A stretch of 64,000 nt of DNA, taken from the NCBI GenBank assembly GCA_965202585.1, contig CBDBBG010000245.1, positions 1-64,000 of the forward strand, in the 5' to 3' direction. The number at the start of each line of letters is the position of its first letter. Position 1 is the stretch's first letter. Of the stretch, positions 601-43,239 are shown piece after piece. Position numbers and translations under genes: made by a program. Source of the DNA: Thalia democratica. Taxonomy: Eukaryota. The notes beneath the pieces are model-generated. The model saw only the letters and a list, made by a program, of their open reading frames with translations. It was not told the origin of the DNA and searched no databases.

Positions 601-2699
601 TTTCATCTATATAATTTTAAGTCGAAGATAATACTTAAAGACACATAAAATACTATGTTATTAAGTTTGTATTTAAGATTTTTACTTTATTAATGATATT
701 AATCATGCATGTTAGATTATCATCTATAAATCTCTGTTTTTTTAAGTAGTTTTTTTATTTTAATATAATAGTTAAAATTTAAAAAAACGATTTCATTCAT
801 ATAAATTTCACTATAGGTTTTCCATTTTTAAAATTTTAAATGCGTCTTATTATATGTTTACTTTTTAATATACAAACCATTGGATCACTTCTAATATTTA
901 GGTAAAAAAATAACTTAATTTTACTTGAATTTCTATATTCACAAATTTTTATATCAAATCTATTTTTTTGGCCATCGCACAAGAGTGTATAACTGCGTGG
1001 AAAAAAATTAATAAATTTAAGCTTTAAAATAAATTGTTAAATCATAGACCAACATATTACTTACCGAAAAAAATAAAAGTGTTATGAATAATAGTTAAAC
1101 AAATATAATGTATTTCAGCGAGTAATTTTATTAAAAAAAATATCATTAAAAAAAAAATCATTTAGGATAGTTATAAATGTGTAATGAAACTTATGACAAG
1201 TTGAAATTCTAGTAAAATAATTAAAAAATAGCTAGTTATCTTAAACTAGATAATTATTTAAATTTTAAGTAATTTAAATAATTAAATGACTTGTAAATTA
1301 ATTAACAATGAAACTACTATTGTTCAAAAACTTTTTAAACCTTATAAAAATAATTACTCAGAGGTAATAGTAGAAAAGATACATGCAAATTTCATTTCAA
1401 CAATGTTTGTTGGCAAAATAATGTTTTCTATCGTTCGGTAAAAATGTGGACCGAACTTCCAAATAAACTAGTATCTTGCAAAAATCTTGAACATTTTCGA
1501 TTAAAGTTTTAAAAATTTGAATTGAATAGAATATTTACCAGTAAATTTTATGAGTAATTATTTTTGTTTATTTCTTTAACCATTGATTTGGTATGTGGTA
1601 TGTAGTTTATTGGTAGTTTAATTTGTAAGCAAAAACTTCCCCTTATAGATCTTAAGTACATCATATTTTTGTTTTTTTTTGCCGTCTATTGTTAATGTGC
1701 TTGGGGCTTTAGATTCTAAAATTATTGGATGCTCAGTTGATTTGTAAGCTAGATTTGTGAATTGTTGCTGCCACATGTTTGAAGTGATTTTTGACTGAAT
1801 TTGCTGTGGTGAAACTTTGAAAACATGATGAATGGCGAATAATTCTTGAGATCAATGTTCTGCAAGATAAAAATTTCTGTCTAAAGTTGAAAATGAATGC
1901 CGTTTGGAAAATTCTTGTTTGATGAAGAGTGGTTTTCAAGATGGTTCCTAGAATTTCGAGCCAGGTTCTGAAAAATTTGACAAAAGACGCTTGTTTCAAA
2001 GATTTGTTCTTGTGGAATGTACAATTGGAGATTGGTGGCTTTTGAATCGTTGAATATTTTTGTTGTGAAAGTTTGAATTTTTTTAGTTTGTGCCTTGTAT
2101 GGATTTTATGTTTGTTTTAACACTGTAATTTATTTTTTTATTTTTATTTTAGTGTCTTTGAATTTAAGTGGTTTAGGTTTGAATGCCTAGGTCGTTCGTT
2201 TGACAAAAAATTCAATAATAATAAATAACATTAAATACTCTGTATACAAATTATTACAATATTTCATACCAGAACATAAAATTTTATTAATTTTATTAAC
2301 CACGTTTTCGTGGTTTAAAAATAATTAACCTAGAAGTAGGTCGACATATATTTCCATTATTATTTAAATACGAGAAATAAAACAGGCTTTACTTTTTGTA
2401 GCCACGTACGTCACAAGTTAAAAAAGTATTGTTTTTCATCATAGTTTTTATTTAATTTCTGCAATTTGAAATGTTTCATGCATTTTATGTTATAGTTTTA
2501 TTAGTGATTATAACTGTAGCACCACAACAAAAATGTGTTTTAGTTTACATAACAAGCTCTTTATCAAACTTAAGAAAATGTGCTATTTTTAGATTATATT
2601 GTAAAAAATATTTATTTATAAACTGAACTTTTTTTTATTACTATGTAGTTATGTAAATGTTAGTTATTAATATTTCAATTAATGATTAAAACTAGCCTG

Positions 2700-2823: not shown

Positions 2824-2847
2824 TATCAACAATCTGAGAAAAGTAAA

Positions 2848-4775: not shown

Positions 4776-4819
4776 AAGTTTATGTGGACAGAAAAATTAA
4801 ACCAATCATTTAATGAATC

Positions 4820-5461
4820 ATTGACGCAATAAAGAGCGGTGTTCAAATTTTTGATCTTGGAAAACTGACTTGTCTTAGACCAGACTGGTCAAAGCAAGGA
4901 TTGGGCTACTTCCTTATGCAGAAACACTGCAAATGCAATAGCCGGTTACCAGATTGCTGCACCACCGGCTGGAAAGTGACGCTTGCAGGTTCAAGGTTTC
5001 TGAATGGGGCAGAAAAGAATTATGCTGCCATAGAAGGGGAGTCGCTTGCTATTGCTTGGTCATTAGAACAGACAAAGTATTTCACTAAGGGCTGCAAAGA
5101 TCTTGTGGTTGTTACGGATCATAAACCACTGGTAAAGATTTTTGGTGATCGCACCTTAAACGAAATTCACAACACGCGCATTTTTAGGCTCAAACAACGT
5201 ACTTTGCCATGGTTTTTTCAAGTGCATTACATGCCAGGTAAAACTAATCTATCGGCAGATGATGCATCGCGTTATCCAAGCTCGATTAGTGTAGTTAATT
5301 CATATGATAATGATTTGACTAACGAATCACTTCTAATTGCTTCATTGAGTAATGAAGTATGCCATTCAATGGCAATCACTTGGGAGGAAATTGTAGAAGA
5401 GACACTAAATGACAAAGTTCTTTCAAGAGTATCCAGGTGTATTGAGGAAGGTCGAAGCTAG
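4820..5461 (+). pseudogene. pol: RNase H domain
   Basis: RPDWSKQGLGYFL..YAAIEGESLAIAWSL..VVTDHKPL..ADDASRYP. Small deletion near 4820; stop at 5459-5461. Confidence 0.9.
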
Positions 5462-6866: not shown

Positions 6867-7187
6867 AGTCTGTTTGTTCCTGTTTATACAAAATGTTTGT
6901 GCTGAGTGTTCAATTGATGCTGATAGTGATGATTGCTGAGCCAGGAAGGATTCAGCGTGAAATAGCATGAATTTGTATTGTTTTTGATTTATTTAGTGTG
7001 TTTTATTGCAGTTTTGATTTTCTTCAAATAAATCCCTTGTTTAAAGATTTTTTATTTAAGTCAATTGAGTTTTTTTTTAATGCATAAAATTTAGTTTCAT
7101 CTTAGTAAAATATTTTTGTTACTCGTTTAAATCCCCTCTTGACGAGCTATGTCATTGCCTTAAACTTGTTATTATCTTTAATGAGCT

Positions 7188-10300: not shown

Positions 10301-13300
10301 TCTACAGTTTAAAGATGTATCTTAAACAGGTTCTTTGCAAAACAACAAAAAGTAATTTAAATGATTTTTTATAAATTTTCTTATAAATCTTAAAAAAATC
10401 AACTATATAGTTTACAGTAAATTAAATTTTTCATACTAAGACTAATATTTTTTGAAAATGAATACATTTTGTTAAACTACAAAATTGCTAGTTAAATAAG
10501 AGCAGTTTTACTTAACAACTTAAATTTGTATATAATATAGGTTTAAACGAAAACTAATAGTAGCTCTTTTTGAAGTATACCAAAAATAAAATAACTTTTT
10601 GAGATACAGGTAAAACTAGATAAACATTAGCAGAATTGTATTGATAGTTTTAGCCACTTTTTAGTAGCTTTTAAATCGGTCGTTTAGCGACTGAAATGGA
10701 AACAGAGTCATTTATACTTTGAAAGCAAATTAATATAAAAGAAATGCTGCAAAAAACGTTTGTGGTAAGAATAGTGTGACGTCACTACGAGGTTTATCGT
10801 TTTTGATTTGGTTATTAATTTTTGTTTATCATTAGTTTTCCACCTACGTGAAACTATTTATTAAATACTTTTTTTATCTAATACTATTTGTTTTTAGTAT
10901 AAACTCTATTTATTTGCTATCCATTAAAAATTCAACCAAATTTTCTTATTATCTACATTACAAAAAAAAAAGCATATTTTGCAACATATTAGTAAATGAA
11001 CAAATATATTTTCTACATAAAAATGATTTACTTATGTACAAAATATTTAATATTTCAATAAAGTGTTTATTACAAGTGATATTTTTATTAATCTCATTAA
11101 TGGAGTGAAATTTTTTTTTTATTAATAAGTTTACGAATTAACAATCTTGTAATTTTTAATAATTATTTTCTGATTTTTTTTTCCTTAGCTTTAATTTCCT
11201 TAGTTGTAATTCAAAGTCACTATGTTTAAATGAAGTCTAAATCTTTACTTGATTAGGCAAGTTGAAATGTTTTCAGATATTTATAATTTTTGGTAATTAT
11301 GAAAAACAAGTTATACTTGTACTAACTGTTGATAGACTTGTACATTTTTTATAACCATATTTATAATAAAGTCTAATTCATTACTTTATTAGGCAAATTG
11401 AAATAGGTTTAAGATCATTAAAATTTTTTTTAATCATAAAAAAGCAGTTATCTTGTACTAACTGAAAATAGATTTATAGAATTTTGCAACCACATTTTAA
11501 TGGTTATTAAATAAAAATGCAGCCGGATGGCAGAATGATACAAATCTACAAAAAATTAACAATATGTATATATTAGAAAATGAAACATGGATTTGCTTTT
11601 TGTAGGCAATTACGTCACAAGAAGTAAAACAATTATTTAGAATTTTGTTATTAGCCCTAACATTTATGCTAATTAACACTGTTATACAGACAAGAATAAT
11701 AACTTTTTGACTTAAAACACAATATTAAAAAAAAAGAATATCACAGCATTTACAATTCGAACATTGTCACATAACATTAAGAATAGAACGCACTATGTAT
11801 TTTTGGTTTATATTACCAGCAATTCCTTCTTAAATCATTTATATTGTTAAACGTAGTTAGAACTTGATTAGAAAATCCAGTTAAAGTAGTTACTGTATTT
11901 TTTAGTTTAACTAATCATAATAAAAAAACTTAAAACAAAATTGACTTCATCTACTTTTATTTTGTTTTTGGATAATAATAATCGATTTTAAATGTGAATC
12001 TTCAACAACTATCGACAATATCAAGATAATGAAGATTAATTTTAATGGAAATGGTAAAAGAAAATATAATATGTATTGCTGCTTGTATTCAATTACAACG
12101 CAAGTAGCTTTTTTTTTTACTGTCTTAATTTCTGAATTTAATTTTACTAAGCATAAAAATACACACTAAAATAGTTGTTTTAATTTTATTTTGAAACTTA
12201 ACATTTTTTTTTATTTTGTTTCAATAATATATTTAAAGTTAATTTTTATATAAGTATTAACATTCTATGGATTGGTTCTCACTTTTAAGAAGATAAAACA
12301 ACATTACTATTTATTTTAGTTTAATAACTGTACTTATATGTATTACTGTTTAATAAAATTTCATAAAAACAAAAACCTCATAGCTTTTTACTAAACGGAG
12401 TTGTTATAAGGAAAGTAATATTTGTTAGCCAAAGCCATATCTTTCTACCACAATATATTTAATAAAACATAGAAACTTCACAAAAATAAATATAATAAAC
12501 ATTAAAACTTATTGTTGCAAAACTTTTAACTTGGTGATGTGACGTCAGTTGAATTGAAGCAATATTTTATGATAACTTTTATTTACACTTTAATTTTAGT
12601 TCAGAACACTTTTAGGTCAAATATTTGCAACTGTTTTTACACTTTTTATAACATTAAAGAACCTAAAAGTATACTAAAAATTGACAGCTTAAAAACTTTA
12701 TTTTTATTTTTTAGTAGTGACTAAAAAACTTGGTAAACATAGCATTAGATTAAAGACTTTACTAGATTATAAACTTAATCATATTACTCAAAAATAGTTT
12801 AACAACAACCATGATTATGGTAACAAAAAAAAACTGATGCAAAATTAATTAATTGTTTTATAAAATATATTAAAAGAGGAAATAAAAGTAATTTAAATAA
12901 TTATTTTACTAGTTTTTACATTCTAAAAACTTAAATAAAAGAAACTTCATATCTTTGAATTTTACACCAGTTGTTAAAATAGTTGCTGTTGTATAAAATG
13001 AGAAAGAATTATTTTATTTATATTAATTTTTTATAGTTTTTATACAAACACTCCGTATAATACTGGTTAATTAAATTTGATTAAAAACTTGAGTATTATA
13101 ACATTTATAAGTTTATAAATAAAACTAGCGTTTATTGATTTAAAAAAATTACGTTTTAAGTAGCAAAATTCTATTATTTATTATTGTCCAATTTTCATGC
13201 TGTTTTGTCGATTAAATTTGTATTCAAGTATTTTTTTTACTTATTAAGTATTTTATTTAATATTTTCTTTAGACGTTTTATATCTTAGTTTTATTGCATT

Positions 13301-17730: not shown

Positions 17731-20700
17731 TTCTACATCTAAATTAAAATTTTTTTAATTTTTTTCAAGCCAAGTTCTGTGACTTATACTTAATAATAAT
17801 AAAAAATTAACATAAAAAAATTCCCATAAAAAATACCACATAGTACAGTGGTTAAAAACATTTTACCGCCCAATTCATGGAAATATGGTTGAAGATCCAG
17901 TTTATTATATACAGATATAGTGTACGGCATTTTGTGATTTTGTTCAATGACCTCACCACAAAAGAGAACTCGGTTGGTTCTCGCTTTTTTAAACGTTTTG
18001 CTTTTTAAATTCTTTATGTTTAAACGACAAAAATAATGGTTAGCAAATTCGTAACATAGCAGGACTAACAAAAAGATAACACTTTTGTTTAAAACTGGTT
18101 TAAAATATTTAATTGTAGAGCACAAAACTTAGCGATTTTGTTTAATTACATCACTACAAAAAAGGACTCAGGTAGTGAAAGTTCAAGTGAAGATTAATAA
18201 AAACTGTACAGCACAAAAGAAGTAGGAATGACTGTTCCAAGAATTAGGGGTTCGAGCAAAAGAATAATGAAATTTAATAAAAGAAACAACTCCCTGTCTC
18301 GGATTAGTGATGAATAATTACCTAATATACAGATAGACATTTTAACTTAATTACAAATATGATTTTTATTTTTAAACCACGTAACACGGTGGTCTTGAAA
18401 TATTCACAAATTAGAACACAACAAAATGATTTGGTAGATCTGGTTTATAATATATTGATAATGTACAAGATATTGCAATTTTTTTCAATTACATCACTAC
18501 TAAAGAGAATTCAGATATCGATTATATCTTTTTAAAGTTAATGTTTTTAGATCATTCAAAAAATTGTGATCAATACATATAAAAACCTTTAATAATCTAA
18601 TTATGTAACATAATTGTTGATAGTAAAACACTTTGATAGATAAACCGAGCGCCACTCTAAACTTTAAACCTTTTAATTGCGATTAAAACGCAATGCAAAA
18701 ACTAAATGTAAGAAACGTGGATTCAACTAAAAGATTAATTAAAATAAATAAAGGTAACAATTCCTTGTTTAGGATTAGTAATTAATAACCACCTACAATT
18801 AAGATACGCGTATGAATTCTGGTTCAGTAAAATCAGCTTCAAGTTTAAACCACTTATTACATTACAGTGGTGTGCAAATACTCAAAAACTGGATTGGTAA
18901 TTATTGTCAATGGAACAGGTTTTCATATACAATTATAGATTACAAGTTTTTGTGATTTTGTTCAACAACGTCACTCCAAAAGAGAAACAAAATGATTCTC
19001 TCTTTTTATTTTTATTTTTTAAACTGTATGTGATCAGTAGATACATGTATAATATCTACAAATGTATAATTATACAGCAGAATTGTTGGTAGAGTAAAAG
19101 ATGTTGAAAATTTTAAGATGTTTTAGTTTAAAGATGATAAGAACCATTGTATTGAGTACAAGCTACTACAAACAAAAGAAAAACAATCATCATAAAATCA
19201 ACACTGATGTAGTTGTTTAACTTTATAAGTGACAGTAATATTCAACATGCACAATGAACAGCAACACCAGCGTGTTTATTTGCGTATTTGGTAGTTGATA
19301 AAACAAACTATGTGCAAAACAACTTTTAAATTAGAGTGTTAGAATGTTAACTAACTCGAGTTCCTTTTTATCAACTTGTTATTCGAGGAAAGATTGACAA
19401 AATTTTTTCTGTAGAGCACAAAAGAGTAGGATCCATTAGATCTAAGAATTGATATTTAAGCAAAAGACTACTGTACTAGAATAGATGTAACAAATCCTCG
19501 TCTCGGATGAACAGTTACCTAGCATGCATACACGCATGTTAACTTTTTGCTTTCAAGGATGATTTTCATGTTTTTAACCACATAACACAGTGGTCTGCAA
19601 ATTTTCACAAATTCTCATAGAACATTGTATTTAGTTGATCTGGTTTATTATATACAAATATAATGTACAATATGTTTTCATTTTGTTCAATTACGTCATT
19701 ACAAAAGAGAAATCACTAGGTTATTTATTTTCAATTTTTTACTTTTCAAATTGTATGTGCTCAGTAAATACATGCATAAAAATCAACAACAAAAAAAGAA
19801 ACTGCATGCATTAATTATAGTTGAATAGGTATCTGCCTAATAGTTAAGCTCACTTTATATTTGTATAAAAATATTCTAAAACGAAACTGAAAGCTACCTA
19901 CGTCACTAAAACTTCAAAATGATCAATTTATCAAAATCTTCTACCAATGAATACTTACAATATATGAATATATCTTCTACAAGTACTTTCAATACAAAGA
20001 AAGATATTTACCAGTATAGTTTTCGAATTTTCCACAACAAATCTTTAAATCAAACGTAGTTGAAAAACAAGTAAAATAATTTAAAATCCTTTTGTTAGCT
20101 GGTTAAAATAAATTTATCAGCATGTTTTGAGTTGTTAAACATAAAGGAAATGCTTAAATTAAAACAATTTAACAATAATAGATACAATTATATTACAGTT
20201 TTAGAGGAAATAAAAGTTTTAGTGAAGATTAAGTAAACATTGAAGAAATTGTTTCAGTAACAAGTCAGAATAAGTACCAATTGTTAACCTTTATAATGAG
20301 TTTTGACTTTTATGATGAGTTTTCTGTTAAAAATAACACTATCCTTAATCTGAATAACTAATTTGGTGTGTACAATAGTTTTACCTGAGATTTATGCACA
20401 TTAATTTACACAATGTAAACGTTTACAAGAGTTATTTTTATGTTTAAACCAAATGAAATAAAGGGTTGTAAATTACTACGGTGGTTGGTAGAGCCATTTC
20501 TAGAACAATATAATGACTCGAGTGTTTAAAAAAAAATTAACATGCATGGCTTACAAGACAGGGCTTAACCCGGAATCAAACAAGTGTTGTTTAAGCAAAG
20601 ATTACTGAGTATGAACTTAGTGGAAAACTATGCTACTTGCCATAAAGGGATAAGTATTAATTTTCCGTTTACAAGAAAGTACTGAATATTTTAGCCACAT

Positions 20701-21221
20701 GACACAGTGGCTTGCAAATAAGAGTAGCATGAAACATAAATAGTAAGCTCTGACTAATCTGTTTTATATATACAGTTATGGAGTACGAGGTTTTGCGGTT
20801 TTGTTTAATTACGTCATGAAAAAGATAAACTAGTAGATTCTCTCTTTTAAATGTTATTTAAAAATTTAAACATTCAAAATATCGTGAATAGTGAATTTGT
20901 GTGCAAATATTAAAAAAATATTTTTACGAAGTACAACTGTTGACAGAGTAAATGAAATTCGAGAACTGAAAGATTAAATATTCGCATGTTAACTACCTCG
21001 AGTTCGTTTTTATCAACTGGTTGGTCGTAAAACTTCGAGTAATGATTGACAAAAATAAAGTAAAAAGATTAGGATTAACTGGATCTAGTAAACGTGGATT
21101 CAACCAAAAGCTTATTGATTTTTAAACAATGGTGGCATACTCCTTGCTTCGGATGAGTGATGAACAGTAAACTCAGCATGCAGACACGCATGTTAACTTT
21201 TTGAAGACGATTTTTATGGTT

Positions 21222-21274
21222 AAACCACATAACACAGTGGTCTGCAAATATTCTCAACCTATTCCATAGCTAAT
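21222..21274 (-). ncRNA. Representative predicted small RNA unit (unique 5' segment + Sm-like motif + stem-loop)
   Basis: Predicted AUUAGCUAUGGAAUAGGUUGA-GAAUAUUUGCAG-ACCACUGUGUUAUGUGGU; TATA and GTGACGTAATTGAAC lie upstream on the minus strand. Inferred only. Confidence 0.4.
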
Positions 21275-21379
21275 GGTATTATTTATCCAGTTTCTATAAA
21301 AAGATATAGTGTACAATATTTTGTGATTTCGTTCAATTACGTCACTACAAAAGAGAATTCGGTTGGTTCTCTCTTTTTT

Positions 21380-23037
21380 CAGGGTTGCCACTCTTTGAGC
21401 CAAAAAATCTTCCCTGAGTGACCAAAAATTTCCCTGAGTAACCTTAAATTTCCCTGAGTTTCCCTGAGTATTTTTTCAAATCTTAAAAAAAAAAATTTCT
21501 CTTCTAACACAAATTATTAATACCTCATTCTCATTTTTCTTCTTTAATAATAAAAGGAAGGTTGTATGTGTATGCTTCTGCATTAAATTTATGAAAAACT
21601 GTTTTCAAAACTCAATCTTAAAAGGTTTAAACCAATTTAAAATTTGAAACTAAATTTTTGCACAACTTTGTGTAAACTTGTTAGTTAACTTTCTACATAA
21701 AAGAATAAAGTTTAATTTGTTTAAAATTTTAATTGACAAAATTTCTTAAGCTATAACAATAATTTCACATGAAGAACTCACTTAAATGCATACATAATAA
21801 CTTCATTATGATTTGTATGTCTTTCCTAGCAACTGTTCTGAATGCAGTAAATAAAACTTAAAAGCTTAACATTATTGTAAAAAAACCTGCAAAAAGAAAG
21901 TTTAAAGAAATAGCTTAAGAAATATCTCATATCAAAGTACAACTTAATACCTAACAACTGATACAAAATAATCTAAAATTAAATTTTTTTTATGTCTTTT
22001 AGATGTTCATACACAATCTGTTTTAAATAATTGAAAACATAATTTTGATTTTAAAAGAATTTCACATTACCTAATAAAAAAATCTTAATACTGTTTTTTT
22101 AAGTATGCAATTTCTAAATCAATAGTTTTAATTTTATTTTCAAGTTTATTTGCTTTGTCCTTAGCAGCTATTCCTCTTGCTAACAATTCTTTCATTGCTT
22201 CTAAAATCAGACTGTTTGTTGGCATCTGCAGTATATTTGTCATAGTCTTCATTCAAACATTTGAGTTGCTTTGTAAGTTTACTTTTTTGTTCTCCTAACT
22301 TGCTCAAAGCATCACCTTTATTTGGAACATTTTTAGCAAAGCGCTGTTGCTCAAGATATGCAAAATATTGGGCCCTAGAAGATTTTACAAATGTTAACAA
22401 TTCAGAACTTAGTTCAACTGTGCTTGGTTCTAGACTGTTTGCATATAGATGATCTTTGATCATTCTTAGGGACCTTATTGTCATCTCTCCCATATTAGTT
22501 GATATTACTTCCTTATTTAAGCTAAAGCCCCGTTCAACACTTGCCTGGCCATTGTGAAGCACAAAAACAGCCTCAAGGACTCTTGTTAAATCTGTATACT
22601 TGCTTGGGATATCGAGTGTGTCAAAATAAAAGGTGTCTAAACTGTGACTTTTTTCAAGAAAATTTTCAAAAAGTATTTGAGTGTTAGAAGAACTTAAAAA
22701 TCAATGTATTGATTTATGCTGTCATCAACCTCTTTTGCTTTTAGTATCTTCATGCTGACAAGTTGTTGGACCAACCTTGTAAAGTTTCTGACACAACGGT
22801 CTTTACCCATTCCAATTAGACATGCTGGATTTTTTAACAAAAGTAATACAACACTAATCTGTATTCATTTTAATTTTTTTACTGAAAACAAGTAGTTGTA
22901 AACAAATAACAAATAACTTCCCTGAGTTTCCCTGAGTTAAAAGAAAAATGCCAAAATTCCCTGAGTTTCCCTGAGATTTTCTACAGTTTGAAAATTTCCT
23001 GAGATTCCCTGAGTTCCCTGAGTGTGTGGCAACCCTG
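21380..23037 (-). mobile_element. Internally deleted hAT-related DNA transposon (probably hAT5-like)
   Basis: TIR CAGGGTTGCCAC/GTGGCAACCCTG; many subterminal TTCCCTGAG repeats; T-run duplicated on both sides relative to empty sites in sister units. Minus-strand remnant LDTFYF..VLHNGQASVERGFSLNK (22161-22820). Confidence 0.85.
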
Positions 23038-23479
23038 TTTTTTAAAGGTTTTACTTTTGAAATCGTATGTGATCAATAGATATATGTATAAAAATCTACA
23101 AAAATATATATTTAGCAGAACTATTCATAGAGAAAAAAAAACTTGAAAAACTTAAAAATCTTACAGTATTACTTGCAAAACTTATAATAAAAAAGTCATT
23201 TTCAAAAACATATAGAACATTTATGAACATATAAATATAGAAGCAGAAAAGCTAATAGCTTCGAGTTTCTACTTAAATATGTAAAACAAAACACCTGGTA
23301 ATAAATTAACTACGATGAATTTATAAGTACTTTTTTCTATATGTTTAGTATTGAACACATAATCTGTCTTTGATAACCATCAAGACACAAATTCAAAGAT
23401 AAATAAAAATCACAGCATTATACAGAGTATCACACTTAATAATTGATAGCCCTTGTATGTTAACACAAACAAATACTAA

Positions 23480-23794
23480 TTAACTTATTTTAAAGTTTAG
23501 TTTTTTTATAAATTCCAACATTCAAAGTCTTTTAAACTATAAAAGGAACATTTTCTGAAAGTTTGAGGTCTCTACCTTAAAAAATAAAGGAGAAAATAAA
23601 TTTTTAATTATTCTTTAAATTTCCGAGAAAATTGACCCCAAAAAACTTGCTGTCTATACGTTTGTATCAGAAAATTTTTGTTAAAGTTACAATATCTCAA
23701 AAGTTAGATAAGATTTTTTAATTCTATGAAAACTGGCTTGTAGCTTTCATTTAAGATCAAATTTTATTTTTAGTAAAAATATGTCGGACCGCCC
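23480..23794 (-). mobile_element. TTAA-ended non-autonomous element fragment (Kolobok-like), related to 48565-49171
   Basis: Ends GCCC|TTAA. It is reverse-complement similar to 48565-48790 (ctacaagccagtttt, ggggtcaattttctc, ctcaaactttc) and interrupts a spacer that is intact at ~26880. Confidence 0.55.
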
Positions 23795-26700
23795 TTAAGT
23801 CCTTAAACAAAAAACAACCATCATAAAATCAGCACTAATGTAGTTGTTTAACTTTACAAGTAACAGTAATATTTTACATGCAGATTTAACAGCAACACCA
23901 GCGTTTATTTATTTGGTAGTTAATACAAAACAACTTTTGATTTGATAATATTTTAAGACTGTTAGAATGATATCTAACTCGAGTTCGTTTTTATCAAACT
24001 GTTGGTCGAGTAAAAATTGAGAAAGAATTTTTCTGTACAGCAAAATCGGATGTGATAATTGGGGTTCAAGCAAAAGATTACTGATTTTTAAGCAATGGTG
24101 ACAAACTCCTTGCTTCAGATGAGTTATGAACAGTTACCCACCATGAAGACACGCATGCTAACTTTTTGATTACAAAGATGATTTTATGTTTAAACCACAT
24201 AACACAGTGGTCAGCAAATAATTCTATGGACTTGCAAATGCATTTGAATCCATGATCCGGTTTTTATATACGAATATCGTGTAAAATATTTTGTGATTTT
24301 GGGGAATGACGTCACCACAAATAAGAATTCGGTTGGTTCTCTCTTTTTTAAACGTTTTGCTTTTTAAACTCTTTATGTTTAAACGACAAAAATAATGGCT
24401 AGCAAATTAGTAACATAGCAGGACTAACAAAAAGATAAAACTTTGGATTACAACTGGATTAAAATATTTAATTGTAGAGCACGAAACTTAGCGATTTTGT
24501 TTAATTATGTCATTACAAAAATAACTCAGGTAGTTAAAGTTCGAGTTAAGATTAATAAAAACTGTACAGCACAAAAGAATTAAGAAATAAATAAGATCTA
24601 AGAATTAAGGGTTCGAGCAAAAGAATAATGTAATTTAATAAAAGAACAACTCCCTGTCTCGGATTAGTGGTGAATAATTTTACCTTATTTACAGATAGAC
24701 ATAATAACCTTTAATTTACAAATATAATTTTCATGTTTAAACCACGTAACACAGTGATCTTGAAATATTCACAAATTAGAACACAATATAATGATTTGGT
24801 AGATCTGGTTTATAATATAGTGATAATGTACAAGATATTGCAACTTTGTTTAATTACATCACTACTAAAGAGAATTCAGATATCGATTATATCTTTTTTA
24901 AAGTTAATGTTTTTAGATCATTCAAAAAACTGTGATCAATACATATATAAACCTTTATGATCTAATTATGTAACATAATTGTTGATAGTAAAACATTTTG
25001 ATAGATAAATCGAGAGCAACTCTTAACTTTAAACTTTTTAATTGCGATGAAACGAATTGCAAAAACTAAATGTAAGAAACGTGGATTCAACTAAAAGATT
25101 AATTGAAATAAATAAAGGTAATGATTCCTTGTTTAGGATTAGTAATTAATAATCACCTACCATAAAGATACGCGTATTAACATTTTGTTCAGTAAAATCA
25201 GCTTCACGTTTAGACCACTTAATACAGTGGTGTTCAAATACTTAAAAACTGGATTGGTAACTATTGTCAATGGAACTGGTATTTCATATACACTTATAGA
25301 TTACAAGATTTTGTGATTTTGTTCAATTACGTCACTAAAAGAGAAACAAGTAGATTGTTTAATATTTTAAATTTAAAACATTCAAAACGTTGTAAACAGT
25401 GAAGCTGTGTGAAAATATTTTCAAAAAATTAATTTACGAAGTAGAATAGTTGACAGAGTAAAAGAAATTTGAAAACTTTATGATTAAGTATTCGCATGTT
25501 TACTAATTCAAGCTCGTTTTTACCAACCTGTTGGTCGTTTTAGTTTGAGTAAACAGGTTGATAAAAAGGAAAGTTTTCTGTACAGCAGAAATAAGGGGGA
25601 CACTAACTGGATTTAAGAAAAGTAAATTCATGTAAAACATATTTTATATACACTTATAAAGTACAAGATTTTGTGATTTTGTTCAACTACGTCACTACAA
25701 ATGAGAAACAAGATGATTCTCTCTTTTTATTTTTACTTTTTAAATTGTATGTGATCAGTAGATACATGTATAATATCTACAAATTTATAATTATACAGCA
25801 GAATTGTTGGTATAGTGAAACATGTTGAAAACTTAAGGATGTTTTAGTATATAGATGATAATAACCATTGTATTGAGTGCAAACTACAACAAACAAAACG
25901 AAAAACAATAATAAAAAAAGCAGTACTGATGTAGTTGTTTCAGTTTACAAGTAAAAGTAATATTAAACATGCACAATAAACAACAACACCAGCGTGTTTA
26001 TTTGCGTATTTAGTAGCTGATAAAACAACTATATGCAAAACAACTTTTAAATTAATAATATTTTAAGTTCTAACTCGAGTTCGTTTTTATCAGACTTTTA
26101 GTCAAGAGAAGAGCCAAGATTGACAAAAGTTTTCTGTACAGCATAAAAGAGCGGGATCTGAGAATTGGAGTTCAAGCAAATTTCTTACTTCTGTTTCTGA
26201 TTGTTAAACAATGATGACAAGCTCCGGACTAGCGATGAACAATTACATACAGACACGCATTTTAACTTTTTGCTTACAAAGATAATTTTCACGTCTAAAC
26301 CACATAACACATTAGTCTAAAAATAATCCTATAGACTTGTGAACTCACTGATTACCTTAGAAGAGTTTTTTATAAACACATACAGTGTACAATATTTTGT
26401 GATTTTGTTCAATTACGTCACTACAAAAGAGAATTTAGTTGGTTCTCTCTTTTATAAATGTTTTACTTTATAAATTGTACGTGATCAATAGATATATGTA
26501 TAAAAATCTACAAAAATATGTACATATTTAGCAGAACTGTTCATAGAGAAAACATGTTGAATAACTAAAATCTTACAGTCTAACTTGCAATACTTGTAGT
26601 AAAAAAGTCATTTTAAAAAACATCTAGAATATTTCTGAGTACATAGAAGCAGAATAACTAATAGGTTCTAGCTTCTACTTTCTACTCAAATAGGTAAACC

Positions 26701-29700
26701 TGGTAATAAATTAGCTACAATGGTTTTAAAACTACTTTTTTCTATATGTTTAGTATTGAACACATAATCTGTTTTTAATAACTACCAAGAAACGACTTCA
26801 AATAAAAATACAAATTACATATTTTCAGAGTATCACACTTATAGCGTAATTGATAGTATTTGTATGTTAACACAAACAAATGCTAATTAATTTAGTTCGA
26901 AAAAATTATCGTTTTTAGTAATAAAATATTATAGCTATGCAATCTTTATATTATGTTAATCATAGTACAGAGCACACTTTACAAAAAAGACACCACATAA
27001 AAGAACAGTTTGATTATTTTAAGTTTAATAAATTTAAGTTGTATTTTTAGGTGTACATCGTAAAAATAAATTAAATTTATTGGAATTAAGACTTAACAAT
27101 AAACAACAAAGACAAGGTTACGATTTGACAAACTATTAGATTAATAAGCAAATTAAACTGATTAAATATGTCTAAAGTATATAAATTTTTGTATTTCAAT
27201 AGAACTACTCTACTTAAATAAACAAACAATGTTTTCACCATAATTTTGAAGAAAACATTTCTTTTTATGTACAGCCACTAAGTAATGGATTACATATTAA
27301 TTACAACGAGGTTTAAATCATGCAAGTCTATCGGTGGCTTTATATTTGTATCAAGTTTTTTCTTCTTAAAATACTTTCAATAACTCACGTCATTAAACTG
27401 TTCTAAACGAATTTTCATAAATATCAACAGCATAGTTGCTCGGGGATTAGAAATGTTCATATTAATTTATTTGAACAAATTTCCAGCGCAGACTTTAAAG
27501 TTTGTTTCGACCACACAACAGAATTTGAAAAAATGTAATAACTGCGTGTTTATATTAAGCGGTAGGTAATTAACTAGGTAACTTGCTTACATACCATTCA
27601 GCATACTTTTCTATTATTAAGACAAGGTTATTACTGGTTTTGAATAGTTCTTTGTTTTTAGTATCTGAAGTAAAAAAGTTTTCATTCCACATGTTAGTTC
27701 TAAAATGTAAGGAAATGTTTTAACAGAACAGAACTTAGATTTAAATGAATGATAGTGCACAAGAATTTGCAGTTTCGTTCAATTACGTCACTAAAAAGAG
27801 AATTCGTTCGATTCTCTTTATTTTTGTTTCAATTCAATGTTTTTTAAAAACATTCAAAACATTGTGTAAAGTAAATTTGTGTGCAAATAATTTCAAAAAA
27901 AAAATTACGAAGTAGAATTGTTGACAGAGTAAAAGGAATTTGGAAACTTAAAGATTAAGTATTCGCGTAAAAACTGACGCAACTATGTTTTATCAACCGG
28001 TTGGTCGTAAAAGTTCAAGTAATGATTAACAAAAATAAAGTTTTCTGTAGAGCATAAAAAAGTGGGATTAACTGGATCTAAGAAACGTGGATTCACAAAA
28101 AAGATTTAAGAAATTAAATAAAGGGAACAACTGCTTGTTTCGGGTTAGTAATGAATAGTCATCTACCATAAAGATGTTCGTATTAACTTTTTGTTCAGAA
28201 AGATGAGCTTCATGTTTAAACCACGAAATACAATGGTGTGCAAATTTTAATAAAATGGCTGAGGAACTGGTATCTAGTATTAACTTATAGATTACAAGGT
28301 TTTGTGATTTTGTTTAACTACGTCACTACAAAAGAGAAACCGAATGATTTTTTCTTTAAAATTTTTGTAGTTGTTTAACTTCACCAGTGTTTTTTTGCGT
28401 ATTTGATAGCTAATACAAAACAACTTTTAATTCAATAATATTTCAAAGAACGTAATCATGTTAAATAACTCAAGCTAGTTTTAATCAACCTGTTATTTGA
28501 GTAAAGATTGACAAAAAGGTTTCTGAACAAAAGAGTAGGATCCATTGGATCTAAGATTTTGAAGTTTGATCAAAAGATTATTGTATTTTAAACAAATTTG
28601 ACAAGCTCATTATTTCGGATTAGTGATTGGCAGATACCTTATATGCAGACACGCATGTTTGCTTACAAAAGTGATTTTCATGTTTTAACCACATAACACA
28701 GTGGTCAGCAAATATTCCCCTCGAGTCTTTAATTATAAATAATTAATTGCACTTTTCATAAACAGATATAGTGTACAACATTTTGTGATTTCGTTCAATT
28801 ACGTCACTACAAAAGAGAATTCGGTTGACTCTCTCTTTTTTAAATGTTTTACTTTTTAAATTGTATGTGATCGATAGATATATGTATAAAAATCTACAAA
28901 AATATGTATTTAGCAGAACTATTCATAGAGAAAAAATGTTAAGAAACTTGGAAATCTTACAGTCCAACTTGCAATACTTCTAGTGAAAAAGTCATGGTTA
29001 AAAATATCTAGAATACTTATAAATATATAGAATATGTATATTTATATATAACTACGTTTAAACCACATAACACAGTGGTCGGCAAATACTTACACTAGGA
29101 GAGGAGTTTCATGATTTGTAGATCTGGTTTTATATAAAGTGATAATGTACGAGATTTTGCGATTTTGTTCATCTACGTCACTACAAATGAGAATTCACAT
29201 ATCGATTTTATCATTTTTAATTTTAATTTTTTTGGAAGATTTAAAAACCTGTGATCAATAGACATAATAATCTTATTATGTAACATAACTGTTAAGAGTA
29301 AAATATTTTGAAAGATCAACCGAGGATAACTCTAAACTTCAAACGTTTAATTGTGATGGAACAAATAATGAATTAAGAGAGTAAAACATGTTAAAAATCT
29401 ATGTATGGTATAGTTCATCTTGCAATAATTTTAGTAAGGAATTAAAATGTAAAAACAACTAGTTTTCAATACAAATCAAATTCTATTATATTTTTTATCG
29501 AATTACTTTAATTAATTTGTTTAATATTGAGCATATACATCTCACTAATCAGTACTTTAAACAATAGGCACTACTCTGTACTTAAGAATTTAAAACAATA
29601 AAGCTGGTAACAATTTAACTACAATCATTGAATTTTTTTCTATATCTTAAGTATTATATACATAATTTCTATTTAATGACCATAAAAGTTACTGCTACCC

Positions 29701-31474
29701 ACCTTAAAATAAAATAGAAAATTTTATATTTTTAACACAAGTTTCACTGTTGTTGACATAATAAATATTGACTAATTAACAGCTTTTTTAGTGAACTAGC
29801 ATGTAATCATTTTTTTTATTTTTACACAAATAAATTCCAAGTAACTTATTTCGAAAATAACGTTTTTTTCAATAATAAATTTTCAAACAAAATGCTTTAT
29901 AGAAAATAACAACTGTTGTATTGAGCGCAAACTATAACAAATTAAACAAAAACAGTCATCATAATATCAACACTGATGTAGTTGTCTAACTTTACAAGTA
30001 ACATTAATATTCAACATGCATATTGAACAAGAACTTCAGTGTTTTTTTTTTGCGTACTTGATAGTTAATACAAAACAACTTTTGATTTAATAATATTTTT
30101 TATTAAAGTTAGCATGTTAACTAACTCAAGCTCATTTATATGAACCTGTTAGTCGTAAAAGATCTAGCAAAGATTAACGAAAGTTTTCTGTAAAAAAACA
30201 ACTTTTGATTTAGTAATGTTTTAAGAGACTTCGCATGTTAACTCGAGTTTGTTTTTATCAACCTGTTGGTCGAGTAAAGATTAATAAAAAGAAAGTTTTA
30301 TGTACAGCATAAATGAGCAGGGTCCATTGGATCTGAGAATTCAAGCAAAAGATTACTGATTTTAAACAATGATTACAAAATTCTTACTCTGATGAACAGT
30401 AACCCAGCTTACTGACACGCGCATTAACTTTAACGCTTACAAAGATGAGTATCATGTTTAAACCACATAACACAGTGGTCAGCAAATGTCATCCTGTCTA
30501 TGAAAATATTGAATTTTTGATTCCGGTTTAATATATACAAATATAGTGTAATATATTTTCTTATTTTGATCAATTACGTCACTACAAAAGAGAATTCGGT
30601 TGGTTCTCTCTTTTTAAACGTTTTGCTTTTCAATTTCTTTATGTTTAAACGACAAAAATAATGGCTAGAAAATTAGTGGCATAACAGGACGAATAAAAAG
30701 ATTACACTTTTGTTTACAGCTGGTTTAAAATATTTAATTGTAGAGCACAAAGGTTTAGCAATTTTGTTCAATAAGTCATTGCAAAAAAGAACTCAGTTAC
30801 TAAAAGTTCGAGTAAAGATTAATAAAAATCTGGACAGGAAAAAGAAGTAGGATTGACTGTTCTAATAATTAGGGTTTAGAGCAAAAGAATAATTAAATTT
30901 AATAAGAGAAACAATTCCCTGTCTCGGATTAGTGATGAATAATTACATAATATACAGATAGACATATCAACCTTTTAAATTACAAATAAGATTTTCATTT
31001 TTAAGCCAAGTAACACAGTGGTCTTGAAATGTTCATAAATTGGAACACAATAAAATGATTCGGTAGATCTGGTTTATAATATAGTGATAATGTACAAGAT
31101 ATTGCAATTTTGTTCAATTACATCACTACTAAAGAGAATTCAGATATCGATTATATCTTTTTTAAAGTTAATGTTTTTAGATCATTCAAAAAACTGTGAT
31201 CAATACATATAAAAACCTATAATAATCTAATTATGTAACATAATTGTTGATAGTAAAACATTTTGATAGGTAAATCGAGCGCAACTCTAAACTTAAATCT
31301 TTTTAATTGCGATGAAACGCAATGCAAAAACTAAATGTAAGAAACGTAGGTTCAACTAATATATTAATCAAAATAAATAAAGGTAACAATTCCTTGTTTA
31401 GGATTAGTAATTAATAATCACCTACCCATACAGACGCGCACATTAACTTTATGATTACACCTATTAGTTTCATG

Positions 31475-31531
31475 TTTAGACCACATAACACAGTGGTCTA
31501 GAAATATTCACCGCATGAAAAGGAATGTCAT
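31475..31531 (-). ncRNA. Representative predicted small RNA unit
   Basis: Predicted AUGACAUUCCUUUUCAUGCGGU-GAAUAUUUCUAG-ACCACUGUGUUAUGUGGUCUA; perfect 8-bp stem TAGACCAC/GTGGTCTA (31477-31500). Inferred only. Confidence 0.4.
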
Positions 31532-32157
31532 GGTTAGGTAGATCTGGTTTTTATGCTAGTGTACAAGGTTTTGCGATTTCGTTCAAATACGTTACCATAT
31601 AAAATTATTCAGGTCGTAAAAATTCAGGTGAATATTAATAAAAAAATGTACATCACAAAAGAGTGGGATCCAATGGACCTAAGAATTGGGGGTTTGAACG
31701 AAAAAATACTGAATTATAAAAAACAAAATTAATAAACTCGTTGTCGCAAATGAACAGTTACCTACCATACAAACATGCATATTAACTTTTAGATTACAAT
31801 GATGATGTTATAACCACATAACATAGTAGTCGTTTAATAATCTTATCGAATTGCAAACGCACTGATAACCTTGATCCGGTTTTTAATATACATATACAGT
31901 GTACAACATTTTGCGATTTCGTTCATCTACGTCACTATATAAAAATATTCAGGTCGTAAAAGTTCAGGTAAATTTTAATAAAAAAATGTACAGCACAAAA
32001 GAGTGGGATCCATTGGACCTAAGAACTGGGATTCAAGCGAAATATTACTGATTGTTAAACAAAGGTAAACAACTCATAATTTCGGATGAGTGACGAACAG
32101 TACCTGCCATACAGACACGAATATTATCTTTTCGCTTACAAAGATCATTTTCATGTT

Positions 32158-32212
32158 TTAATCACATAACACAGTGGCCAGTAAATATTCTTGCCCATGG
32201 CCAAAGTTAATT
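32158..32212 (-). ncRNA. Representative predicted small RNA unit
   Basis: Predicted AAUUAACUUUGGCCAUGGGCAA-GAAUAUUUACUG-GCCACUGUGUUAUGUGAU; the stem is imperfect. Inferred only. Confidence 0.33.
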
Positions 32213-33169
32213 GCATTATTGATCCAGTTTAATATGAACAGATATAATGTACAACTTTAAATTTTTATTCAATTACGTCACCACAAATAAGATTTCGGTT
32301 GATTCTCTCTTTTTTTCTACTAGAGCCACATAACATAGTAATTTGTAAATTTAAGCAACTGCTGTTATAATAATGCAATATATAACTTATTTATTAAACT
32401 AGTTTTTAATATACAATTAAAAAGAGAAACATTTTACGATTTTGTTCGATTAAGTTAATACAAATTCAGTCGATTCTTTTTTTATTTAAAGTTTTGAAGT
32501 TGTATGTGATCAGCATATTAATTACATATTTTTAAATGTTGAAGAGTCTACAAATATTTGAATATTTTACAGAACTTTTACAGATATTTTTGAAAGCAAA
32601 ACTGTTCAATTAGATTAAGTGTTGAATGACTTTAAATAATTTGTTTAGTTATTAGCTGATAATTAGATGATGATACGTCTCACATTGGTATATTGAATAT
32701 ATATTATAAGGTCTTAGTCTCTAGTTAAAAAGTTAAAACAAAGTTAAATAACTTGTTTAGTGTTTAGCATATACATCTCACCAAAGAGGTAAATTGAATA
32801 TATAAGAGCAGAAAAATTATCTCTAATTAAGAAGTTAAGACAAAAAAGGTGGTAATAATTTAACAACAATCATTGTATAATTTTTGTTTTACTTTATCTT
32901 AATAATTGAATACATAAATTTTGATTAATGACCATCAAGATTAGTGATAACCAACTTAAAATAAAAAAGAACATACTTAATTGTCACTGTTGAAATAATT
33001 AATAATGACTGACTAATAGCTTTTATATTGAACTAGCATGATTTATTTTTGTTCACAAATAAATTCCAATTAACCTATAGCGAAAATAACTTTTTCTTTT
33101 AATAATAAAATGCCAGAGCAAACAAAAAACTTTAAAGATAATAACAAACATGTTGTATTGAGTGCAAAC

Positions 33170-36322: not shown

Positions 36323-37690
36323 AACAAAAAATGAAAAATGAAACAATCATCACAAAATCAACATTGATGTAGTTGTTCAACTTTATAAGTAACAATAATA
36401 TCCAACACGCGTATTGAACAACAACACCAGTGTTTTATTTTAATTAGTACTTAATACAAAACAACTTTTAATTTGATAATGTTTTAAGAGACTTCGCATG
36501 TTAACTAACTCGAGTTCGTTCTTATCAACCTGTTAGTCGAGTAAAACTTGACAAAAGTTTTCTGTACAGCATAAAAGAGTGGGATCCATTGGATCTTAGA
36601 ATTGGGGTTTAATCGAAATATACAAAGATTTTATACAAAGGCAACAACTTCTGTCTTGGATGAACGATTACCAACCATGAAGACACGCATGATGACTTTT
36701 TTCTTACAAAGATGAGTTTTATGTTCAAACCACATAATACATTGGCCTGCAAATATCCTCTAAACTTAAAAGTATACAAAATTATTGATTCCGGTTTAAA
36801 AGATACAAATATAGTGTACAATATTTTGTGATTTTGTTCAACTACGTCACTACAAAAAAGAATTCTGTTGATTTTTTTTTTAACGTTTTACTTTTTAAAT
36901 TGTATGTGATCAATAGATATATGTATATACAAAACTACAAAATTATATAAAAATACAAAAGAAATTGTATGCATTAATTATAGTTGAGTAAGTATCTGTC
37001 TAAGAGTCAAGCTCACAATATTTTGTATAAAAACTTATACAATTTTTTACCAATGAATATTTACAAAATATGAATATATCTCTTACTTTAAGTATTTTCA
37101 ATGCAAAGAAAGATATTTACTAGTATAGTTTTTAAATTTTCACAACAAATACTTAAATGAAACGTAGTTGAAAAACAAATACAACAATTTAAAGCCTTTT
37201 ATTGTTTGGTTATAAACATATTTAATAGCATATTTCGAGTTGTAAAACATTAAGGAGATGCTTAAATTAAAGCAACTTAACAATAATAGAAACAATTATT
37301 TTACATTTTAGAAGAAATAAAACGTGTTAGTGAAAATCAAGAAAGCAATTGAAGAAAGTATTTCAGTAACAAATTGTATATAAATATCATTTTTTAACCT
37401 TAATGATGAGTTTTGAATTTTAGATAAGTTTTCTATTTAAAATAACACAATGCTAAATCTGAATAAAGTGTTTTGTGTGTACAATAGTTTTACCTAATGC
37501 AGATTAATTTACACAATGTAAACGTTTAGAAAGTTATTTTTATGTTTAAACCACATGAAATAAACGCTTGCAAATTACTACGGTAGTTGGTAGAGCCTTT
37601 CTTAAAACAATATGATGAATCGAATTATTATATAAGTATTTAAGGCCCACTAAATATATAGATTTAAAAAAAAATTACTAGGTTCTAATC
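36323..37690 (-). repeat. Distal segment of the cassette array
   Basis: One full unit (cassette 36759-36786, ACGTCAC at ~36844) plus a spacer duplicating ~19740-20500. Confidence 0.88.
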
Positions 37691-41070: not shown

Positions 41071-43239
41071 ATTCTAAAAATAAAAGTTTCAATTTTTATA
41101 AATATTGCACAAGTTTGGTTTATTTTATATTTATAATTTAAAAATTTTATATATTTTTTGCATGAAATTTTAAATAATGTATAATACTTGTAATGAAGTT
41201 ATTTGAACTTGTTTAAAGTCAGTCAAAACAACATTTTACTTTAATGCAACTAATGCAGCAATTTGTTTGCAATGTAATAAGCGAAGCTTTTTTTTTCAGA
41301 TCAAAAATTTGCAGTTTTTTCATAAAGTATATAATTTAAACACCTTAAAGTAAAAAAATTGTTATATTTAGTTAAAAATAAAGTAATAACTTTACTTTTT
41401 CACAACAAATTTGTTAAAATTTAATCTAAAAATTTGTAACAGGTTTTAGACCTTACCAAACCTAGGCTTAGGTAGAACTATATTTCGTAATAGTCTTATA
41501 GAAAGATTTCACTATGTATTTTTTATCATAACTGTTTTATATTGTTTATAGTACTTACACATTTTTTTGATTACATAAACGTTTATTTTTTTCTTATTTA
41601 CATTAATGTAGTTAAAAATGGTAATTAAAATTCCATTTTAAAATGATTAGAAAAGCAAAATCCAAAATTATAATTAAAATTTTCCAAAAATAAAAACTTA
41701 TGTTAAACAATTAAAATCATACCTGGGTGTTTACTTGAATTAAAGGAATTATACTTGTAACCACATTCTAGTGGTTTTTAAATTGTTGGTTCTACCAATG
41801 GTTGAGCTTTTTAATTCTCCAAAAAATTCATATTTGATACAAGAAAATTAAACCTACATTTGCTGTTTTGTAGCCAGTTACGTCACGAGAAGACTAAATT
41901 GATGATGCTAACTGTTTAATTAACTCTGAATGGAAACATAAATACTTACATGTCTAAAACTTATACTGTTTATGAAATTATTTTTGCTTATAGAAATTAA
42001 AGTTCTATATAGTTTCTCACTCTTAAGATCATAAAACGACTTAATTAACTTTTAAGTTTTTATTTTTATTGTTGTTACTGTTTAATAAATATTTCTGCTA
42101 CACACTTATTTTATAACTTTTTTGAACTAATCTGTTTAAGGGATAGTATTATTTATTTTTTCAAATTCAATAGTAACAAGTCAAAAACTAACGTGTTATA
42201 AGATAAAATAAAATTTTGGGAAATTTTGAAAAATAAATATGATTAGTTCACTTTTTTTTTTAATTCCTGCATTCAATACTACTTAAATATAAAGTTCGTA
42301 AAATACTAACCAGTTAAATTATTTTTTTATTAGTCTTGTAATACTTATTTTATATTTTAGAATATTTAAAACGTTAAGATTAGTATTTTACGAGCTAAAA
42401 ATTGATGTTTTTACTCTTCTAGTTTAAATAAAATTTAATATACTTTAATGAAATTAAAAACTAATATACTTTTTTTTTTGATTAAGTTTAGTTCCAAATA
42501 AAAAAGTTTTAAAGAATGTTTCTGAATTTTAAGAACACGAAATAACTACAGTAAATTTTAAATTTTTGTTTTATAAATTTAATTTTATGCAGAAATTTAA
42601 TCACACTAGTTTAGTATCTTTTTATTTAAACAAATTGTTAAAAGGATAAAAATAACTGTTGGCGAAAGGTTTAACTTTTATCAAAAAAAAAAACAAAAAT
42701 CAGTTTAAGTTAATCAAAACTTCTAGAAATAATTTTAAAAGAAATTTTGTGAAAACTAAAATTTTTATACCAAATTTATTTAAGATACTAAAGTGACGTC
42801 AGTACAGTTGCAACAACTTTGTCGCAATCATAGTAATTTTGTAATTTTGCGATCTAATATGCCAAATTAAAAAAAGTTATATTTACTTCATTTTATGAAG
42901 TTTTTTAACAAAATATTTATTACGACTTTTATTTTGTCTTTTCCCGTAGTACTGCTTGCTTTTTTTTTTTCTTTTTATTGTGTTACACATAAAAACAAAT
43001 AAAATATTGAGTGATAAAATTTACTAATATGAATTGTGTCTATTAGTCATGGTTTTTCTATCTTTTTATGTTAATTAAATTTTCTTTTTGTACTTAAATT
43101 TAACGTGTTATAAATTTTATAAAATAATTTTACTTTAAAGTTAACTAAAATTATATTATAAGATTAGTGAAAATAAAAATTCTAAATAGCTAAATTCCTT
43201 TTTCTAACAGTTGAAATTTATATGGTTTTTGTAAAAAAA

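Follow-up and report, generated by a model that had tools for sequence, protein, structure and literature searches.

What, if anything, is made from a family of short repeated units that lie on a single strand of a contig of the tunicate Thalia democratica? The stretch in question, referred to here as the window, comprises 64,000 nucleotides (nt) at positions 1 to 64,000 of contig CBDBBG010000245.1 (assembly GCA_965202585.1; C254 in our numbering), part of an 802-Mb, AT-rich genome. An initial annotation of the window had proposed an RNA body resembling U7, with a unique 5′ segment, a U-rich Sm-like motif and a 3′ stem-loop carrying compensatory changes. The analysis reported here demonstrates a family of units, the kinship of their promoters with those of small nuclear RNA (snRNA) genes, purifying selection on the promoter and the RNA body, and a variable cassette that is saturated in sequence and fixed in length. 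The best explanation, to which we give roughly even credence, is that these are clustered snRNA-type genes for predicted small guide-like RNAs of an undescribed class.

Unit positions are counted from the T of TGACG (position 0). Read 5′ to 3′ on the minus strand, a unit starts with TTCTCTTTTGTAG, followed by TGACGTAATTGAAC and AAAATCACAAAA, a TATA box with the family consensus GTATATAAAA at +43 to +52, and AAACCGGATC at +52 to +61. The variable cassette, whose sequence differs between genes, occupies +62 to +88. It is followed by a semi-conserved (U/G)G(U/A)GAA(U/A) at +89 to +95, and then by the U-rich motif AUUUGC(A/U)G, i.e. AUAUUUGC(A/U)G. The hairpin, with the consensus (A/G)ACCAC-UGUGUUAU-GUGGU(U/C) and then TTTAAACATGAAAATCATC, starts 117–122 nt into nearly every unit, and a 3′-box-like TTTAAACAT lies directly past it. 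This agrees with the minus-strand order given in the initial annotation (variable part, GAAUAUUUGCAG, ACCAC-N8-GUGGU, GTTTAAACATGA). The U-rich variants listed there (...UUUCUAG in the unit with its motif start at 31594, ...UUUCAAG at 18496) and the stems located there (AGCCAC/GTGGCT at 20693–20712, an 8-bp stem at 31477–31500) were also found in place.

A search of the window with a profile built from the family recovered 25 units between 17,835 and 36,863, all on the minus strand (Table 1). Genome-wide, a 28-nt promoter core has 74 matches at ≤3 mismatches, so the family comprises at least 74 units; a preliminary BLAST search gave 91 candidates. The promoter-core matches are almost confined to ~1.4 Mb of one contig (C1:13.39–14.81 Mb) and to the small contigs C254, C192 and C368. 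The sole match outside the C1 cluster and these satellite contigs, at G000:C6:7119142-7119169 (+), may represent a founder, or a copy put to another use. From 110 kb of the C1 clusters, 65 units were gathered, and the hairpin was well placed in 48 of them; most per-unit counts below use these 48 units, which were reduced to 29 cassette types or group representatives where cassettes are compared. The entire repeat of ~600 nt can be aligned between units. Metagenome scans with the hairpin and with the promoter core found no relatives.

The same layout recurs, again on the minus strand, in an older subfamily at 2.3, 11.6 and 41.9 kb of the window. Its members consist of GTGACGTAAYTGSCTACAAAAAGCAAA (with a different tail of the upstream element), a TATA-like box, an A/U-rich stretch and AACCAC-N6-GUGGUU, and they keep the CCAC/GUGG stem with a 6-nt loop, as against 8 nt in the main family. 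The old units singled out initially do exist, with AACCACG/CGTGGTT at 2315, AGCCA/TGGCT at 8704 and AACCAC/GTGGTT at 41776; in the older-type copy near 8704, TAACGTCA is degenerate.

The upstream CTCT.. and TGACGT(A/C)A blocks of the family match, in type and orientation, those of the U1 and U6 genes of the same genome. In the U1 genes, which lack a TATA box, GTGACGTCATAA stands exactly 75 nt ahead of the start. The U6 genes have ctctc..TGACGTCA(C/T)AA at −82, a CACAA block 20 nt further on and GTATATATA, whose G falls at −32; they also have a T-run terminator. The palindromic TGACGTCA lies upstream of both U1 (−75) and U6 (−82) genes. Common to the family and to both gene types are the TGACGT(C/A)A element and its orientation, and with U6 the family also shares ctctc, CACAA and TATA, whereas its transcribed part is unrelated to either. 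In addition, the 3′ flank of one U1 copy carries the 9-mer TTTAAACAT, as in the family. Judged by these elements, the promoter of the family is of the snRNA type and putatively SNAPc-dependent, like that of the U1 and U6 genes of this genome.

Because the U1 spacing (75 nt) and alignment to the U6 TATA box (+43 plus 32) concur, transcription would be expected to start near +75. The predicted RNA would then measure ~50 nt, and in it AUUUGC would be preceded by about 14 fully variable and 7 semi-variable bases. The unique part of ~21 nt in the initial annotation corresponds to these 14 and 7 bases, and its length depends on the placement of the start; the first 13 nt of the cassette fall upstream of it. 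T is over-represented at +77 (in 19 of 29 cassette types) and at +78, immediately past the predicted start; this could indicate where the RNA really begins, or a base preferred at the initiator.

The hairpin motif CCAC-N8-GTGG occurs 11 times in the window, as compared with 0.07 expected, a count that none of 100 shuffles reached. In single sequences the stem folds at about −5 to −9 kcal/mol, and the stem at 31477–31500 reaches −13.9 kcal/mol (z −3.1). The CCAC-N8-GUGG core extends to 5–8 bp, and its four pairs are almost invariant across the 48 units; one stem pair changes from A-U to G-C, in 3 related units only. Two weaker points speak for a helix in a minus-strand RNA. The outer pairs are mostly G-U, which on the opposite strand become C-A, so pairing there is possible only in a minus-strand RNA. 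The change from an 8-nt to a 6-nt loop in the older subfamily likewise suggests a hairpin in RNA more than a palindrome in DNA, since a dimeric DNA-binding site would not tolerate it. CACTGTG within the hairpin resembles a recombination-signal heptamer, but the upstream A-rich block has the wrong orientation and distance, and from the sequence the resemblance was judged to arise by chance from the palindrome.

Identity between cassette groups is 0.75–0.76 in the promoter, 0.68–0.72 in the RNA body, 0.51–0.58 in the spacers and 0.32 in the cassette. Composition alone predicts 0.29 for the cassette, and spacers that were shuffled and realigned give 0.34–0.37; this control was used in place of pairwise gapped identity of 33-nt windows, which is uninformative (baseline ~0.57). 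The spacers lie above the shuffled baseline and the cassette does not, indicating that spacer homology is real and that none is left in the cassette. Many pairs of units have spacers that are ≥80% identical and cassettes that are entirely unrelated, and cassette identity is bimodal, at either ≥0.7 or ≤0.48. In 13 independent recent pairs, divergence is 13.8% in the promoter, 16.2% in the body, 21.6% in the spacers and 25.6% in the cassette. The values for promoter and body are significantly below that for the spacers (p 3e-8 and 0.003), so purifying selection acts on both parts. In redundant copies the cassette changes at the neutral rate or slightly faster; over the long term it is the sole part without residual similarity, yet its length is held. 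Two processes could produce this pattern. The flanks may evolve in concert while selection keeps cassettes from being overwritten, or the cassettes may be replaced.

Taken together, these data suggest the following scheme. SNAPc and RNA polymerase II (Pol II) would start transcription ~75 nt past TGACG, and the 3′ end would be formed at the 3′ box TTTAAACAT just past the terminal hairpin. The predicted product is an RNA of ~50 nt with a variable 5′ arm, a single-stranded AUAUUUGC(A/U)G and a hairpin of 5–8 bp whose 8-nt loop is conserved. Its constant part would most likely bind a protein core, either an Sm/LSm-like ring or another hairpin-binding protein, while the arm, of fixed length and different in each gene, would most likely base-pair with different RNAs. 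The result would be a set of guide ribonucleoproteins built like U7 without being U7. The initial proposal has held up as regards a multigene family, a predicted RNA of ~50 nt with a diversified 5′ segment, the constant U-rich motif with its terminal hairpin, and an element resembling a 3′ box; to these the analysis adds the snRNA-type promoters. A bolder extension, which we offer only tentatively, is that a chordate maintains a library of 75–100 or more snRNA-type guide RNAs with one constant protein-binding module and arms that are kept different. Such a library would be a family of programmable ribonucleoproteins that direct the cleavage, processing or silencing of many RNAs; engineered U7 antisense RNAs would be its artificial counterpart.

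Several points weigh against this reading. The compensatory stem changes reported initially are no evidence, as double-sided changes occur in 8 cells compared with 4.9 ± 1.7 in shuffled alignments (33 of 500 reach 8), which is not significant, and RNAalifold predicts no consensus helix on the units. Published Sm patterns are not matched by the U-rich motif: 0 of 48 units fit either the textbook RAU(3-6)GR or the U7 pattern, and its designation as Sm-like was not confirmed. The Sm site of the genome's own U1 (loci L009–L016) is AAUUUCUCC, not of the textbook AAUUUGUGG type; it fails the textbook pattern as well, which makes that pattern a poor test in this genome. No Rfam family covers the units at gathering score (window) or at E≤10 (15–38 kb), the U7 family RF00066 included. 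About half of the units in the window have a mismatched stem or a degenerate block, or lack the RNA body altogether; stem mismatches in some units had been noted in the initial annotation. In recent duplicates the cassette diverges at about the spacer rate (p 0.06), and individual arms thus show no sign of being under purifying selection. Three 28-nt cassettes searched against the genome at ≤3 mismatches match only their own paralogues. The longest complementary runs (exact plus G-U) between 29 arms and 21–28 distinct histone 3′ flanks, a test that covered part of the histone genes and units, are not above shuffles. A 13-mer scan of 339 kb of collected sequence for cassette targets or sources returned family members only. 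A TATA box in an animal snRNA-type promoter usually marks a gene of RNA polymerase III (Pol III). Two sequencing runs that were mapped proved to be genomic DNA contigs, with every bin covered.

Much of this would be expected if the units were a decaying tandem array derived from one snRNA-type gene, in which few or no copies work and the cassette is an unconstrained stretch and not a guide. This is the main rival, and we regard it as unlikely. It draws on the near-neutral rate of the cassette, the missing targets, the non-significant stem covariation, the many defective units and the 13 nt of cassette that precede the predicted start. It is harder to reconcile with purifying selection on promoter and RNA body over many independent pairs, with a cassette length that stays nearly constant despite saturated sequence, and with cassettes that are unrelated even where both flanking spacers are ≥80% identical; the persistence of the architecture in a much older subfamily also argues against it.

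Alternatively, the units could act at the DNA level or in some other way, as alternative promoters and first exons of a downstream gene or as repeated protein-binding modules. A GGTAG|GTAAC-like donor lies ~75 nt past the hairpin, the consensus contains a splice-donor-like GGTAGGTAA, all cluster units point in the same direction, and the repeat of ~600 nt is alignable throughout. The donor-like site, however, is no better conserved than its neighbours, neither coding potential nor a common downstream exon was seen, the spacing of the palindrome half-sites differs between subfamilies, and the kinship with U1 and U6 promoters is specific. We therefore consider readings of this kind improbable.

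Are the units instead diversified U7 genes, each arm directing the 3′ cleavage of a different histone gene by pairing with that gene's downstream element? By its published definition U7 has a terminal hairpin, a deviant Sm site, RUUUNUCYNG, and a UCUUU box whose pairing partner is the histone downstream element; it also has a Pol II snRNA promoter and a 3′ element, and is usually described as one functional gene or as a small cluster of genes (PMC5054213). It has not been found so far in tunicates (PMC8704543), and here a genome-wide search with the Rfam U7 model, in which 65 of ~400,000 candidates were scored, gave none above the cut-off, only AT-rich sub-threshold matches without the upstream motif. 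The layout fits: a small predicted RNA of ~50–60 nt, encoded by a gene of the snRNA type with a 3′-box-like element, the same order of single-stranded 5′ arm, single-stranded U-rich motif and terminal hairpin, the last directly 3′ of the motif as the U7 definition requires, and a fixed arm length that would suit a “ruler”. The unit at 31594 even has AAUAUUUCUAG, near the U7 site. The genome's histone genes carry 3′ stem-loops (GGCTCTTTTAAGAGCCACC; in loci L025–L054, GGCTCTTTTAAGAGCC or GGCCCTTTTAAGGGCC), and the 50 nt past them are very diverse, with no evident common purine-rich downstream element across gene types, which made the idea of one arm per histone gene attractive.

Four tests nevertheless spoke against membership. 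RUUUNUCYNG is found in 0 of 48 units and its core UUUNUC in 1, and UCUUU occurs in 1 of 48 cassettes, where 7% is expected by chance; the Rfam covariance model for U7, which the initial annotation had suggested as a check, found no match even at E≤10; besides the complementary runs, duplex energies to histone flanks are no better than those of shuffled sequences (mean best −12.0 versus −11.6 ± 0.35 kcal/mol); and the covariation in the stem is not significant. The family also differs from U7 in having a TATA box, tens of different arms and a shorter stem (4–8 bp). Diversified U7 genes are thus a very improbable account, and the idea that one unit is the real tunicate U7 finds no support. The likeness to U7 appears to hold as a description of shape, not of membership.

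We attach equally little weight to the possibility that these are U6-type genes transcribed by Pol III, whose RNA, variable at its 5′ end, would run to the first T4 run ~165 nt past the start (CTTTTG near +240). The promoter is nearer to that of U6 than to that of U1, given its ctctc block, CACAA 20 nt after TGACG and strongly conserved TATA box, and the region 3′ of the hairpin is moderately conserved. That conservation declines smoothly, with no edge at the T4 run, and the spacing from motif to TATA is 44 nt in the family as compared with 51 in U6. T4 runs fall inside the arm in 10 of 29 cassette types (~19% expected, so they are not avoided) and ahead of the hairpin end in 21 of 48 units, and a Pol III gene could not tolerate such T-runs inside its RNA. 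The family also differs from U6 in having no T-run terminator directly past the RNA. Since T-runs are not avoided, Pol II with a 3′ box is the likelier combination, despite the TATA box.

Spliced-leader (SL) RNA genes with diversified leaders can be set aside as highly implausible: a Ciona-type leader is in use in this genome (358 sites of the 16-mer plus GT), and the units resemble tunicate SL RNAs of ~46 nt in size and layout, but neither the window nor any of the cluster loci examined contains the leader, only ~11 of the 37 junction types, as judged by eye, have GU at the fixed place, and the Ciona Sm site AGCUUUGG (PMC7986045) is unlike the family motif.

Coordinates of the units and of the parts of an exemplar are given in Table 1. 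Other features were noted in and around the array. Between two units, at ~21381–23036, 12-bp inverted ends (CAGGGTTGCCAC ... GTGGCAACCCTG) and CTCAGGGAA subterminal repeats bound a transposon-like insertion, and a related insertion interrupts the unit at 1124 of locus L061. Also between two units, at 20307–20396 (+), lies a candidate resembling a C/D-box small nucleolar RNA (UGAUGA ... CUGA, with a terminal stem), whose match to RF00535 is sub-threshold (26.5 bits, E 1.2). Elsewhere in the window, positions 2700–7000 (+) hold remnants of a long terminal repeat retrotransposon pol region (Pfam RNase H at 4901–5461, integrase at 5477–6775), and 54381–54865 is a tandem repeat with a period of 122 nt in four copies of 97% identity.

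Table 1. Family units in the window, with the parts of one exemplar unit and members of the older subfamily (window positions).
Feature	Position	Strand	Remark
Exemplar, upstream TTCTCTTTTGTAG block	21345..21359	-	family-conserved; resembles ctctc block upstream of the genome's U6 genes
Exemplar, CRE-like proximal element TGACGTAATTGAAC then ..TCACAAAA	21319..21344	-	motif start 21344 = position 0
Exemplar, TATA-like box	21294..21301	-	family consensus GTATATAAAA
Exemplar, variable cassette +62..+88	21256..21282	-	predicted start near +75, about 21269
Exemplar, semi-conserved GAG and U-rich AAUAUUUGC (“Sm-like” block)	21244..21255	-	
Exemplar, hairpin AGACCAC-UGUGUUAU-GUGGUUU	21221..21243	-	
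Exemplar, 3′-box-like TTTAA(A/C)CATAAAAATC	21208..21223	-	
Unit	17835..17969	-	upstream-motif variant TGAGGTCA; hairpin intact; U-rich block degenerate; 3′ flank replaced
Unit, divergent-body type	17993..18166	-	AAUUUGCUAACC; without CCAC/GUGG hairpin
Unit, intact	18327..18510	-	U-rich block GAAUAUUUCAAG
Unit	18801..18986	-	5-nt insertion lengthens hairpin loop
Unit, intact	19523..19712	-	
Unit, intact	20641..20824	-	stem AGCCAC/GUGGCU
Unit, intact	21177..21358	-	exemplar
Unit	24142..24328	-	hairpin intact; upstream-motif variant TGACGTCATTCC
Unit, divergent-body type	24352..24520	-	
Unit	24690..24875	-	stem mismatch (GAUCAC)
Unit, intact	25161..25345	-	
Promoter-only unit	25633..25707	-	RNA body absent
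Unit	26246..26434	-	stem mismatch (GACUAAUG)
Promoter-only unit	27748..27803	-	
Unit	28167..28338	-	shortened cassette; stem CCAU/GUGG
Unit, intact	28643..28820	-	
Unit	29053..29194	-	intact including hairpin; AT-rich repeat replaces 3′ flank
Unit, intact	30409..30595	-	
Degenerate unit	30619..30792	-	42 bits
Unit	30952..31139	-	stem mismatch (CUUGGC)
Unit	31427..31604	-	8-bp stem UAGACCAC/GUGGUCUA and AAUAUUUCUAG; upstream motif (start 31594) degenerate; TATA region shortened
Unit	31766..31944	-	degenerate U-rich block and stem
Unit	32108..32293	-	stem mismatch (GUGAUU)
Degenerate unit	32318..32463	-	
Unit	36676..36863	-	stem mismatch (GCCAAU)
Older-subfamily unit	41759..41885	-	GTGACGTAACTGGCTACAAAA, TATA-like box, A/U-rich stretch, hairpin AACCAC-N6-GUGGUU
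Older-subfamily unit	11488..11618	-	GTGACGTAATTGCCTACAAAAAGCAAA ... AACCAU-N6-GUGGUU
Older-subfamily unit	2298..2414	-	GTGACGTACGTGGCTACAAAAAGTAAA ... AACCACG-AAAA-CGUGGUU

If the units are expressed, their products would constitute a kind of small nuclear RNA so far undescribed in animals, with one scaffold, differing 5′ arms and many genes that all depend on the promoter machinery of spliceosomal RNAs. The U7-like design of arm, ring site and hairpin would have been multiplied into a natural guide library, and the finding would bear on the fate of the tunicate U7, so far unfound. If they are silent, they still form a clear tandem array in which a segment of 27–33 nt has lost all similarity and its surroundings have not.

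Among known systems, tunicate SL RNAs are comparable in scale: that of Ciona is a 46-nt, Sm-class RNA encoded by a repeated gene family (PMC7986045). The likeness lies in a very short RNA, repeated genes and the succession of 5′ segment, U-rich or Sm site and hairpin, and the difference in a family that has no leader or conserved GU donor, a U-rich motif that is unlike, and a 5′ segment that changes from gene to gene. The nearest organisational parallel is provided by the nematode loci for type-I Piwi-interacting RNAs (21U-RNAs), where an upstream motif derived from snRNA genes drives thousands of mini-genes (PMC6436959, PMC6317315). Transcription there relies on SNAPc together with Pol II, and its termination depends on Integrator (PMC6436959, PMC6317315, 10.1101/2020.05.01.072298). 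The family described here is smaller (~10^2 units versus 10^4), conserves the whole ~600-nt repeat, keeps a constant U-rich motif and hairpin in the predicted RNA, and, for the three cassettes tested, has no near-perfect match elsewhere in the genome. Both systems consist of many autonomous mini-genes, gathered in few megabase-scale clusters and each with a different short product, and, if its units are expressed, the Thalia array would be a second case, beside the nematode loci, in which an snRNA promoter has been reused for arrays of tiny genes.

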